The notes under the pieces are model-generated. The model did not search any database. It was not told the DNA's origin and saw only the letters and a list, made by a program, of their open reading frames with translations. A stretch of DNA of 63,686 nucleotides from Macrostomum lignano (taxonomy: Eukaryota): NCBI GenBank assembly GCA_002269645.1, contig NIVC01004032.1:1-63686 (forward strand). The letters are read 5' to 3'. The translations under genes and the position numbers were made by a program. This document shows, piece by piece, positions 22,901-28,900 of this stretch. Numbering within the stretch: the first letter of the stretch is position 1; each line of letters starts with the position of its first letter.

Positions 22901-25900
22901 ATGCGCTTTGCTGTGTGAGAAAAATACGATACGTCCATCATGATCTATGAAATCAGCTGTACGAATTATGAAAAATATCTGTGACTGAGATAAATATTCG
23001 AGACAAAATGGAAAGTTCAGTTGAGAGGAAACTGCTGCAGCCGCCCTACCTCTGACTGCCGTCGCAGGTAGCACTCCACGTAGGCGTCGCTCAGGCAGCC
23101 GGCGTCAAGGGCTGGCGCAGCGGCAACCTCCGGCCCCAACAGGGCAGTGACGAGGCCGGCCGTGGCGCGAAGGACGCGGAGCTCCTGGCCCCGCCGCCGG
23201 CCGCGCAGCAGGGAGTTCAGGCAGTCGCAGAGGTGGCCCTCGTTGCAGGCGGCCGCCTGATTGGCCGCGCTGCCCGCCACCAGCCTGCGCAGCGACTCGA
23301 TCGTCTGCACCGTCAGCTCCACGCATCCGACGCCTCGGCGCCCGGCAACCACGGCCAGGAAGCGGGCGACCTCGGCCACCAGGTTAACCGACTTGACGCT
23401 GTCCGGCTGGTTGCGAAGCCGCTCTCGCAGCTCCTGGCGGACAGTCGGCTCTGTCAGCAGCACGCCAGCGGGGTCCGGTTCGTCGCACAAGCGGCCCAGC
23501 AGGCGCAGCAGTAGCCCGATGGGGAGATCCTCAGTGGTGGCCGCTGACGGACGTCCCGATCTGGCGGCTGTGGAGGTGCCGGATGTCGGCTGCTTCGGCT
23601 GAAGGTGGCGGATAGCGCGGGACTTGGCGAGGGCCTCCTCGATGCGGGCCCAGCGCTGGCCGATGAGGGATTGCCTGCATCAGTGCGAGTGGCTAGTCAG
23701 CGAATTCAAGGAATCCCCGGGCATACTGGCTGCAATCTACACCAAAGTCTACGCTTAAGTTTGGCACTCACTGCTCCTTCAGTGCGGCTGAGGACTCCCG
23801 GATTGTCAGCTTGATGTCGAGGAACAGAGCCGTCTCCTCCCGACGACTGGCGCGCAAGCAGCTGAGAAGACTCTGCTGGGCGCTGGAGTTGCCGTTGAAC
23901 AGTTGGCAGGACAACAGAGCGGCGGCCTCCTGCCTGACCGCCTGACAGCGGTGCAGCAGCAGGGGAAGAACCCGGGGAACCAGGTGCAGCGAGGTGAGCG
24001 AGTTTTGGGCCAGCGAGATGACCTGCAGCTGCCTGTGCGGGTGCAAGTCGAACACATTACTACTACTACTTACTACTACTACTACTACTACTGACTGAGG
24101 ACGGCGCTAGGCAGCAGATCTCCTTCTGCAGACGGTCAGCGATTCCCGGAAACATGCTGGTGCCGCCGCTGAGCACGATGTTGCAGTACAGATCCTTCCT
24201 GATGTCCATATCGCACTTCATCACGCTGTTGAACACTGTCTCGTGGATTCCGGCCGACTCCATGCCGAGGATGGCCGGCTGGAACAGGGCCTCCGGGCAG
24301 CGGAAGCGCTCACTGCCGACGGTGACCACCTGACCGTCGGGCAGCTCGTAGCGCTTCTCCAGCGCGCTGCTGCTGGCAGCTGTGCTCATCTCCTGCTCAA
24401 AGTCGAGCGCAGAGTAGCACAGCTTCTCCTTCATGTCGCGGACGATCTCCCGCTCCGCCGAGGTCTTGAAGTCGTAGCCGCGCTCCGTGAGAATCCTCAC
24501 CAGGTGGTCGGTGAGGTCGCGGCCGGCCAGGTCCAGCCGGAAGATGGCGTGCGGCAGCGCGTAGCCCTCGTAGATCGGCACCGTGTGCGAGACGCCGTCG
24601 CCGGAGTCCAGCACGATGCCGGTGGTGCGGCCGCTGGCGTACAGCGACAGCACGGCCTGGATGGCGACGTACATGGCGGGCGTGTTGAAGGTCTCGAACA
24701 TGATCTGCGTCATCTTCTCGCGGTTGGCCTTGGGGTTCAGCGGTGCCTCGGTCAGCAGCACGGGGTGCTCCTCGGGGCCACCCGCAGCTCGTTGTAGAAG
24801 GTGTGGTGCCAGATCTTCTCCATGTCGTCCCAGTTGGTCACCACGCCGTGCTCGATCGGGTACTTCAGCGCCAGGACGCCTCGCCTGCTCTGGGCCTCGT
24901 CACCGATGTAGCTGTCCTTCTCGCCCATGCCGATCATCACGCTCTGGAGTTGGGGAGGGCATTTTGTGAGGTACAGGGATTGTGTGAGGCTCAGGGATTG
25001 TGTGAGGCTCAGGGATTGTGTGAGGCTCAGGGATTGTGTGAGGCTCAGGGATTGTGTGAGGCTCAGGGATTGTGTGAGGCTCAGGGATTTTGTGAGGCTC
25101 AGGGATTGTGTGAGGCTCGTGAGGCTCAGGGATTGTGTGAGGCTCAGGGATTTTGTGAGGCTCAGGGATTGTGTGAGGCTCAGGGATTTTGTGAGGCTCA
25201 GGGATTGTGTGAGGCTCAGGGATTGTGTGAGGCTCAGGGATTGTGTGAGGCTCAGGGATTGTGTGAGGCTCAGGGATTGTGTGAGGCTCAGGGATTGTGT
25301 GAGGCTCAGGGATTGTGTGAGGCTCAGGGATTGTGTGAGGCTCAGGGATTGCACGAGGCTCAGGGATTGTGTGAGGCTCAGGGATTGTGTGAGGCTCAGG
25401 GATTGTGTGAGGCTCAGGGATTGTGTGAGGCTCAGGGATTGTGTGAGGCTCAGGGATTGTGTGAGGCTCAGGGATTGTGTGAGGCTCAGGGATTGTGTGA
25501 GGCTCAGGGATTGTGTGAGGCTCTGAGCTTCCTACAAATCGGAAAGGCAATTCAGGCAGCTGAGCTCACGCTGTGCTTCGGTCGGCCCACGATGGACGGG
25601 AACACCGCCCTCGGAGCGTCGTCCCCAGCGAAGCCCGCCTTGCACATGCCGGAGCCGTTTTCGACCACCAGGGCTGCGATTTCCTCACTGGCCATTGCGC
25701 TGTGTTGGCTTTGTGGGTTTCTGTTGAACTGCTGGAATTCAAGCTGTGTGCTTGAGTTCGTGCTCAGCTCGATGGCAGACTCCTCTTTTGTAGACTTCCA
25801 GATGGTCTGGACAGCTCCCCATTGCCTGCCATATATGGAAGTGGCGGTCCCAGTCGCACTGCTGGGGATCCTAATTTGGAGAGCTCACCGTCCCAGGTGC

Positions 25901-28900
25901 AGCTGAATGTTGCTGTGGCCATATATGGCAGGCAGGGAGTGCGCTTTGAAATTTGTATTTCCTAATATGGCAACGACAGACTCTTACAATCACAGTCAAA
26001 TATAGCTGAAGCAGATTCCATTTGGTTATTTCGGCTTGCCATCGCTGTGAGTTCTGTGTAGCAAGCATTATGCATTGCTTTGCCTGCAGAGCGCTCAGGT
26101 TGGAAGTCCCCGCGTAGCTCACAGCTATTTTTAGCAGCACAATGCCTCATTCCTGTGCAATCACTATCTCTGCCTAAGGAAAGCAAGCAGTTATTCTAAG
26201 AGTTACAAACGGTACAAGTGATACAAAAGGTGACACGTCAAAAGTATATTTGATTCGACATTTGATCTTAGAATTTTTCCTTGATCCCGGCTTGGAATTC
26301 AAGACTGATTCATAAATGCCCTGCACAACATGTAGCAGAGGTCAGCCTAGTGCGAGTATAGTGGTTAGAAATCCACGAGGTATTTAAGCCTTTGAAGTAA
26401 CCAAAATTTTAGAGAATGCCTTTACTTTTCTGATAACACCTGTACACCGTAATTGCACTGTAATTGCACTGTAATTGCACTGTAATTGCACTGTAATTGC
26501 ACTGTAATTGCACTGTAACTGCACTGTAATTGCACTGTAATTGCACTGTAATTGCACTGTAATTGCACTGTAATTGCACTGTAATTGCACTGTAATTGCA
26601 CTGTAATTGCACTGTAATTGCACTGTAACTGCACTGTAATTGCACTGTAATTGCACTGTAACTGCACTGTAATTGCACTGTAATTGCACTGTAATTGCAC
26701 TGTAATTGCACTGTAATTGCACTGTAATTGCACTGTAATTGCACTGTAATTGCACTGTAATTGCACTGTAATTGCACTGTAATTGCACTGTAACTGCACT
26801 GTAACTGCACTGTAATTGCACTGTAATTGCACTGTAATTGCACTGTAATTGCACTGTAATTGCACTGTAATTGCACTGTAATTGCACTGTAATTGCACTG
26901 TAATTGCACTGTAATTGCACTGTAATTGCACTGTAATTGCACTGTAATTGCACTGTAATTGCACTGTAACTGCACTGTAATTGCACTGTAACTGCACTGT
27001 AATTGCACTGTAATTGCACTGTGATTGCACTGTAATTGCACTGTAACTGCACTGTAATTGCACTGTAATTGCACTGTGATTGCACTGTAATTGCACTGTA
27101 ATTGCACTGTAATTGCACTGTAACTGCACTGTAATTGCACTGTAATTGCACTGTAATTGTTTCGGCCAACTTAACGGGTATACGAGCGTACAACCTTAAA
27201 AATTTCTTTTCCGTTCTTGAATGATTTTGAAATTTTGAATGAGTTTGAAGGAATGCCCGCTGAAAATACAATTCGAATGCTGAGAACTCATACAAAGTTT
27301 AAATAGTTTAAATACATTTTTCACAGTTGTTTGTCAACTTACTGTAGCAGCTGCAGCAGCTTCTCAGCTCCGGCCAGCCGACGCGAGTCCGTCCAGTCCC
27401 GGCCGGCGTCCACAAAGCAGGCGGCGTGGTCCTGGAACTCCTTGCTCAGCGGCAGCTCTTCGCCGCGGCCAAGCTGGGTGTACTCTGTGCAGTTGTAAAC
27501 ATAAAGAGTTACTGCAAGAAATATAATGCAGCAGAGTCCCGGGATTTTGCAGGGACTTCTGCGTACGAGTGCCGAATACAGCAAGAGTCTAGCGGTTTTT
27601 GGGGTTCGAGCCCCGGAGTTCCGTGTCTGAGAAGCATGTTTTTCGCCGGGGATCGATTCCCAGTTCTATCCAGCAACAGTGCGCTTTAAACAGCTATGGG
27701 AGAGAAAAACACACCTTTTGCGGAATATCTGCTGTCTTAGGTTGGATAGCTGTTTTTCAGGGTAGATGCCTTTTTGCTTTTAGCGACTTTTTGCTTTTAG
27801 CGACTTTTTGCTTTTAGCGACTTTTTGCTTTTAGCGACTTTTTGCTTTTAGCGACTTTTTGCTTTTAGCGACTTTTTGCTTTTAGCGACTTTTTGCTTTT
27901 AGCGACTTTTTGCTTTTAGCGACTTTTTGCTTTTAGCGACTTTTTGCTTTTAGCGACGTTTTGCTTTTAGCGACTTTTTGCTTTTAGCGACTTTTTGCTT
28001 TTAGCAACTTTTTGCTTTTAGCGACTTTTTGCTTTTAGCGACTTTTTGCTTTTAGCGACTTTTTGCTTTTAGTTCCTGAGTGCTGCAGGAGTTCACAGTC
28101 ACTTCCGGCTGACGAAAGTTAACCGGACACCGGCCCCTGAGTGCTGCAGGAGTTCACAGTCGCTTCCGGCTGGCGAAAGTTCACCGGACACCGGCCCCTG
28201 AGTGCTGCGAGAGTTCACCGTCGCTTCCGGCTGGCGAAAGTTCACCGGACACCGGCCCCTGAGTGCTGCGAGAGTTCACAGTCGCTTCGATTCCCGCGCG
28301 GCACCCCGGAAGAGAAAGAGACTCACACCTGTAGTTCGGGCAGACTCTAACAACACGGTAAACCGCGTACCCAACGTCACGTGCTTATTGTTACTTTACT
28401 GCCGCCAGCGGGCCAGGGGGGGGGTAGGGACGGGACGGGCGGGGCGCGCGCAATAAATAGCAAGGAAAAAGGGGAGGAGGGTAAGCTGATAGACAATAAC
28501 CAAGTACATACCACCCTGCTGGCCAGCCAATCACAAGCCGCCAGCCGGGGTGGGGTGGAGCAAACTTGAGCCGGCCAGCGCACGAGATCGGGGGCCTTGG
28601 CCAGACCGTAGGCCAGACTAGGGTGAGGCTTAAGCCCTCAAACGCCAGCCCGACCGGCCGGCCCAACCCAGCGCGAGGGGAGAGAGAAACAGAATGGAGA
28701 GAGAAAAGGGCCGGAAGGGTGGAGCCCTCGCAGACGCAGTACGGCACCGCAATTGCAAATGATTGTACGAGCTACACTCAGCTACCCCGTCCCTCTCCCT
28801 CACCGCGGTCGCACGGGAACCCGATCTGGGCTCGAACTGTGTTTTCTCCGCCGTAGGTGATCCGACAGTTCGTAGCAAACGCGTTCAGCCTCCTATTCAG

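Follow-up and report, generated by a model that had tools for sequence, protein, structure and literature searches.

Results

An actin fragment lies within an intron of a calcium-release channel gene

We analysed a stretch of Macrostomum lignano DNA of 63,686 nucleotides (nt), corresponding to positions 1 to 63,686 of contig NIVC01004032.1 in assembly GCA_002269645.1 and referred to here as the window. In it, a gene for an inositol trisphosphate (IP3) receptor-like Ca2+-release channel (14588-44917, minus strand; the host gene) carries in one of its introns a broken copy of an actin gene, the complete version of which lies 22 kb away. An earlier note, made from the letters of this DNA without database searches, had proposed that the two genes meet one base away from an in-frame actin-channel chimera. 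The results described below point instead to a gene-damaging rearrangement, in which the actin fragment is probably tied to the loss of a conserved channel exon and has given rise to no fusion gene.

The identity of the host gene follows from its domains. Pfam matches, all exceeding the gathering scores, run from Ins145_P3_rec and MIR at the N-terminus through RIH and RIH_assoc to a C-terminal pore domain with six transmembrane segments (Ion_trans), and collinear tblastn matches confirm that this is the domain order of the superfamily formed by IP3 receptors (IP3Rs) and ryanodine receptors (RyRs). Specifically, tblastn with P0002, the IP3R of the limpet Patella caerulea and a full-length relative of the host gene, and with P0006 placed the host exons in order from 44917 to 14588, collinear with full-length relatives. 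Among solved structures in the PDB the best match of the host protein is IP3R3 (7t3p, E=4.7e-46), and its nearest relatives are annotated lophotrochozoan IP3Rs, to which it is only ~35% identical, indicating that the host gene is fast-evolving. It may belong to the invertebrate 'IP3R-B'-type subgroup. In the pore loop, where the exon join was set by eye, the host translation reads GLIGGIYS opposite GLRNGGGVGD of IP3R3; the selectivity-filter motif GGG[VI]GD is missing from the relatives P0002, P0003 and P0004, and may be missing from the host protein too.

Three host exons, all on the minus strand, frame the region of interest. Exon A (27343-27511), which ends in AEKLLQLL and matches residues 1538-1584 of the P. 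caerulea receptor, has its last base at 27343 and a phase 2 donor, CTACA/GTAAGT (the slash marks the splice boundary), just as the earlier note had read it. Exon B (23772-24032, QLQVISLAQ...LFNGNSSAQ...KEQ, donor GGAGCA/GTGAGT) encodes armadillo-type repeat sequence of the ARM3/central domain. With a profile of the region it maps to residues 1717-1803 of IP3R3 and 1785-1878 of IP3R1; the profile was needed, as direct phmmer searches of the PDB with the A-B-C region or with the P0002 segment missed the IP3R chains here. Exon C (23050-23674) carries the RIH_assoc domain found by Pfam. The join of exons A, B and C is open and in frame, and the other mapped host exons are open as well.

Among proteins the channel exons have a single close match, P0001, a UniRef entry of M. 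lignano, which is 100% identical over exon C (at 23304-23050). The window and P0001 disagree at several residues, so at least one further copy of this gene must exist. P0001 and two near-identical UniRef proteins of M. lignano, P0063 and P0064, span exons C to G and are IP3R-like in sequence; their names are unrelated to such channels (Anoctamin, RGS domain-containing and AC_N domain-containing) and were seemingly carried over in annotation from gene models that had been fused.

The intron between exons A and B (24033-27342, minus strand) contains, in the direction of transcription, an 11-bp satellite, 275 nt of unique sequence, the actin fragment (copy 1), an (AGT)n microsatellite and a 26-nt tail that leads into exon B.

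Copy 1 is a truncated, inverted duplicate of a complete actin gene

The complete, parent-type gene (copy 2, 47730-49978, plus strand), delimited by tblastn, encodes 376 amino acids (aa) that match the Pfam Actin family over its full length (E=2e-144). Behind four CArG boxes it has its ATG at 48187, a first exon ending at 48312, an intron with an 18-bp repeat, the one also seen in copy 1, and a second exon at 48974-49978. Copy 1 (24093-26169, minus strand) is 2.1 kb long, runs in the same sense as the host gene, is inverted relative to copy 2, and duplicates it in part, from the upstream blocks to codon 326 in exon 2. In blastn, positions 26019-24092 of copy 1 are 95% identical to 47865-49826 of copy 2, and an extra 54-nt block matches at 26169-26116. 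Homology stops exactly after CCTCAGTCA, at which point copy 2 goes on with AGGTGAGG, and copy 1 lacks the final 50 codons together with the stop codon and 3' untranslated region (UTR).

What remains of copy 1 is well preserved, and the anatomy given for it by the earlier note (four CArG boxes, 5'UTR and codons 1-326 up to LAPSSV, on the minus strand) was borne out by the sequence and by tblastn. The four CArG boxes (CC[AT]6GG) at 25829-25970 are conserved in copy 2 at 47912-48053, so that each actin copy has four of them per 142 bp upstream of its start, a cluster that predicts an SRF-type promoter; the window holds 11 such sites against 3.9 expected, 8 of which fall within the two actin promoters. 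Coding exon 1 (25570-25695, 42 codons) starts with the ATG at 25695, differs from copy 2 by 4 substitutions and is followed by the donor GTGAGC from 25569. The intron (24944-25569), in which Tandem Repeats Finder (TRF) reports an 18-bp tandem repeat at 24956-25523, ends in a pyrimidine-rich acceptor, ccctccccaactccag followed by AG. Exon 2 (24093-24943) ends in LAPSSV at codon 326 and shows 7 substitutions and 1 indel in ~850 nt relative to copy 2. The indel is the single-base deletion that the note had reported in a run of C, CCCC at 24774-24777 in copy 1 versus CCCCC in copy 2, and the resulting frameshift limits the product to 105 aa.

Identity between the copies is patchy, strongly so between 25570-26169 (minus strand) and 47730-48312 (plus strand). 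It reaches 100% in the proximal promoter and 5'UTR (136 nt) and 99% in exon 2, and falls to 87% in the distal promoter with the CArG region; one 96-nt block is barely alignable. This pattern is a hint of later gene conversion involving the two inverted copies, or else of a mosaic origin.

Since copy 1 retains the promoter and the intron, it is a duplicate made at the DNA level and not a retrocopy. It has the hallmarks of a non-processed, duplicated pseudogene, with parental intron and promoter kept and the coding region truncated and frameshifted, although the indel behind the frameshift could be a consensus error. An origin as a processed pseudogene was rejected, given the retained intron and promoter, the lack of a poly(A) tract and of flanking direct repeats, and a 3' end that falls inside the coding sequence. 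Capture by a transposon was likewise rejected after a repeat search of 23000-27400 turned up nothing beyond satellites and short pairs attributable to chance.

The 5' edge of the copy 1 block is embedded in unique intron sequence. At this edge (26149-26164, ATTGCACAGG) a 7-8-nt stretch, ATTGCAC, is shared in reverse complement with the unit of the adjacent 11-bp satellite, which could be junction microhomology or chance. As to the proteins, copy 2 is an unusually divergent actin, ~85% identical to human beta-actin, in which the second D of the GDDAPR motif, normally conserved, is N; copy 1 keeps this D and has E in VVDNGSG.

The actin-channel junction is intronic and carries two frame breaks

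At its 3' breakpoint copy 1 abuts the microsatellite (24059-24092, minus strand), which TRF resolves as (AGT)7-A-(AGT)4, confirming the extra base that the earlier note had seen within the tract; it is an A at 24070/24071. This A also creates a perfect 5'-splice-site hexamer, GTAAGT (24068-24073, minus strand), that lies ~40 nt before the acceptor of exon B; in the corrected actin frame, splicing from it would leave exon B out of frame.

Beyond the tract lie the 26 nt AATGTGTTCGACTTGCACCCGCACAG (24033-24058, minus strand). The note had taken them for channel coding sequence, NVFDLHPHR, into which the tract would run directly without an intron. They are in fact the tail of the host intron and end in the acceptor AG at 24034-24033, cacAG/G, with 24032 as the first base of exon B. 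The pyrimidine content of other acceptors in the host gene, confirmed by P0001, is no higher than at this one. Moreover a paralogue in the same species, described below, has its acceptor at the same position and in the same phase, so that the 26 nt are intronic, exon B is complete and 24032 is a native splice site. The acceptor AG together with the first exon base accounts for the apparent R of NVFDLHPHR, exactly as in the genomic translation of the paralogue, RGLRT.

There is no continuous open reading frame (ORF) across the junction. In the assembled sequence, with the actin intron taken out, the frame that opens at the actin ATG closes after 105 residues; putting back the C at 24774-24777 extends the product to 334 aa, and only if the extra A is removed as well does the frame enter exon B. 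The arithmetic behind the 'one base away' claim is therefore correct, yet its significance is not: any out-of-frame junction is off by +1 or -1, which makes such a near miss uninformative, and the C-run needs an edit too. Nor is the openness of the bridging sequence telling, since nine stop-free codons are expected by chance in ~2/3 of cases. In the protein collections searched we found no protein that includes exon B, fused or unfused.

A conserved 180-nt exon is missing between exons A and B

The homologue alignment that the note had called for, to size any missing segment, was run with an exhaustive HMMER search using the spliced host model, which returned 54 relatives. In all those spanning the region (12, plus the same-species paralogue) the parts that resemble exon A (...EYTE.GGDEELPLG.EFQ...AEKLVQQL) and exon B (QLEVIESVQ...LFNGN..VQ) are separated by ~55-62 alignment columns, which carry a nearly invariant motif, LD[VI][KR]CLQ[LI]LR..IHNE..LP..W. 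Where the relatives hold this motif, the window sequence shows a clean gap. The motif is kept in molluscs, in a nemertean and in the paralogue, and can be aligned into RyR central domains. In RyR chains the profile match extends back over the helix concerned, so the missing piece is a structural element conserved across the superfamily, and without this LDxKCLQxLR..IHNE helix segment the ARM3/central-domain solenoid of the host protein is incomplete.

The missing segment was traced to a single exon, here called a', with the help of the paralogue locus (L001, on contig NIVC01000260.1, Mlig_3_7, of the NCBI M. lignano assembly), which belongs to a more distant paralogue family. There, exon a ends at a phase 2 donor, CTGCG/GTAAGC, and is followed after an intron of only 87 nt by exon a' (9052-9231), which is exactly 180 nt (60 codons) long and runs from phase 2 to phase 2; exon b then follows tttcAG/G and starts with (K)GLRTIADIQ, aligned with (Q)QLQVISLAQ of the window. 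The window donor at 27343 and acceptor at 24032 equal the exon a donor and exon b acceptor of the paralogue in both alignment position and phase. As a' is symmetric, exon A still joins exon B in frame. The part corresponding to window exon B is split in the paralogue into two exons, b and b2 (10005-10777), so the window has one intron fewer here.

No trace of exon a' turned up anywhere in the window. Across its whole length tblastn with a' segments gave no credible match, and a profile hidden Markov model (HMM) of a', built without the M. lignano paralogue, scored at best 5.6 bits (E=1.6) in six frames; on the paralogue locus the same model scored 70.6 bits (E=2.3e-21).

Two other accounts of the junction were discarded on this basis. 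A clean intronic pseudogene inside an intact host gene is at odds with the ~55 residues that the relatives show to be missing, and loss of the 5' part of exon B, with 24032 as a cryptic acceptor, conflicts with the exon map of the paralogue, which shows a native acceptor and a separate missing exon. The note's proposal that a deletion had removed host sequence at the junction thus holds for the loss itself; what disappeared is the whole upstream exon a' and not the start of a channel exon.

Other features of the window

The host introns are full of minisatellites, with sites across 21539-42700. They include arrays of 11 bp (26445-27159), 33 bp (22356-22726), 17 bp (27770-28072) and 30 bp (32547-33312) units as well as long arrays at 36.1-38.5 kb and 40.5-42.7 kb, and many of them yield long spurious ORFs. 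A Ty3/gypsy-type long terminal repeat (LTR) retrotransposon (16519-20198, minus strand) occupies a downstream host intron and runs in the same sense as the host gene; its gag-pol ORFs are long and open, and its pol matches RT_RNaseH, rve and Integrase_H2C2. Downstream of the channel gene and on the opposite strand lies a fibrinogen-related gene, represented by an ORF with a Fibrinogen_C match (11190-11672, plus strand, E=1e-31), and a further ORF (7223-7633, plus strand) matches the Myelin_PLP (proteolipid/M6) family (E=1e-15).

Discussion

The account that we favour, and consider likely, is that a broken actin fragment became nested in the channel intron in connection with the loss of exon a', a rearrangement that damaged the host gene and made no fusion gene. 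The 2.1-kb actin copy would have replaced a' and the flanking intron sequence, either in one event or by insertion followed by deletion. It may have arisen by templated repair or a template switch, with the inverted actin locus 22 kb away as the template, that ended at the microsatellite or seeded it; in the two-step version, the 3' end of the actin copy would have been lost in the deletion along with exon a' and the greater part of the intron behind it. The host pre-mRNA could then be spliced from 27343 to 24032, which is in frame, as the earlier note had anticipated in suggesting that the host mRNA could skip the actin. The product would be a channel without a' (delta-a'), short of ~55-60 residues of the ARM3/central-domain solenoid. 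Alternatively, the stronger acceptor of actin exon 2 at 24943 may trap the pre-mRNA, giving CA/A GCG TGA and a stop within three codons. Transcripts started at the intact copy 1 promoter would be without a 3' end of their own and may run on into exon B, with translation ending early. In each of these cases the host gene copy is probably a hypomorphic or dead allele, and the disabled full-length channel, which the note had offered as its alternative, is the better reading. Such a damaged copy may be tolerated because the neopolyploid genome carries further ones.

Several observations weigh against this account. The link between the actin insertion and the loss of a' is drawn from position only, and a' could have been lost earlier, in a paralogue that evolves fast and is ~35% identical to its nearest relatives. 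With the 87-nt spacing seen in L001, the former place of a' would be expected near 27.2 kb, ~1 kb ahead of the actin block in the direction of transcription, for which a larger or a separate deletion is a better fit than a one-step replacement. Both indels lie in a homopolymer or a microsatellite, the commonest sites of consensus errors in long-read assemblies. The open state of the remaining host exons is also compatible with a functional delta-a' channel. Finally, look-ups of exact products (P0001 and the ORFs of copy 1, exon B and the retrotransposon) gave no second assembly of the locus.

The first of these objections, taken further, gives the strongest competing explanation: exon a' was lost early and independently, the divergent IP3R-like paralogue works without it, and the actin fragment is a later and harmless passenger of an intron that had become larger. 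A symmetric a' with an in-frame join of A to B, the open and collinear state of all other mapped exons, the low identity to the nearest relatives and the distance between the expected site of a' and the actin block would all suit such a history. It would, however, require a working channel to dispense with a motif that is nearly invariant in molluscs, the nemertean and the paralogue and that reaches into the RyRs, which would be unusual, and it leaves to coincidence that the gap falls in the sole intron bearing a 2.1-kb foreign block, with a breakpoint 60 nt from the next exon. We regard this history as possible, though clearly the less probable of the two.

Much less probable is an assembly artefact, in which the assembly went wrong at the microsatellite, by a misjoin, a collapse or a haplotype switch, producing the junction and omitting a'. 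The earlier note had treated a misjoin as a serious alternative, and the setting invites the suspicion: the breakpoint sits at a simple repeat, and no independent assembly of the junction came out of our look-ups. M. lignano has a recent, hidden polyploid genome that is rich in tandem repeats and LTR elements and hard to assemble, and its published assemblies are PacBio-based and substantially redundant. The flanks of the junction are nevertheless consecutive exons of one gene in the correct order, orientation and phase, collinear with full-length relatives, which excludes a misjoin of unrelated loci. At its 5' edge the duplicate is set in unique sequence. Exon a' is missing as well from the whole stretch that separates the actin block from exon A, and one switch at the tract cannot account for that. 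Furthermore copy 2 has no (AGT)n at codon 326, and the joint between actin and (AGT)n must therefore exist in real DNA.

The fusion put forward by the note, actin residues 1-326 joined in frame through poly-Ser to the channel and driven from the CArG promoter, with both single-base breaks as consensus errors, fares worst and is very doubtful. An ORF does run from the actin ATG into exon B once a C is inserted at 24774-24777 and the A at 24070/24071 is deleted, both sites are error-prone in a PacBio-based assembly, the promoter and 5'UTR of copy 1 are intact, and in a copy without its own terminator read-through into exon B is mechanically plausible. However, two independent errors are needed, the frame being one base off tells us nothing, the bridging 26 nt are intron with a native acceptor, one indel and 11 substitutions suit the neutral decay of a pseudogene, and the protein collections yielded no exon B protein of either kind. 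A weaker variant would have the intronic actin promoter serve as an alternative, muscle-type promoter for N-terminally truncated channel transcripts.

Under our favoured account, annotators of Ca2+-signalling genes in M. lignano should treat this channel copy as probably damaged; should it prove to be expressed, it may offer a naturally occurring in-frame deletion that takes out a conserved helix of the ARM3/central domain. For the locus to hold a notable new chimeric gene, both indels would have to be errors; actin would then be followed by one third of the channel, its C-terminal part (ARM3 in part, RIH_assoc, the transmembrane segments and the pore), without the ligand-binding N-terminus. 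The locus also illustrates that what looks like a near-fusion can fall apart when its intron positions are set against those of a paralogue.

Comparison with known systems

The rearrangement is best described as an ordinary structural lesion, a known kind of event, in a repeat-rich and recently polyploid genome. The channel itself resembles the IP3R family in having Ins145_P3_rec, MIR, RIH, RIH_assoc and Ion_trans in IP3R order, and departs from a typical member in its strong divergence (~35% identity), the pore loop GLIGGIYS of its translation and its lack of exon a'.

Chimeric genes are known to arise by partial duplication and deletion, as exemplified by Sdic and jingwei in Drosophila. As in these, the promoter and 5' exons of one gene stand, after a duplication and the loss of what lay in between, beside 3' exons that belong to another gene and point the same way. 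The locus differs from them in that there are two frame breaks, the junction is intronic and the host acceptor is intact. A second parallel is the loss or skipping of symmetric exons in large, repeat-built proteins, given that a 180-nt, phase 2 to 2 exon is gone and its flanks join in frame; unlike a skipped exon, a' is missing from the host DNA itself, and it encodes a motif conserved in both IP3R-like channels and RyRs.

The third parallel is with a non-processed pseudogene lodged in a host intron: copy 1 keeps the promoter and the intron of its parent, is truncated at one end and is frameshifted. What sets it apart from an ordinary intron-nested pseudogene is that its identity to the parent is patchy, the two copies lie inverted 22 kb apart, and its presence coincides with the loss of a host exon, the breakpoint lying 60 nt from the next one.

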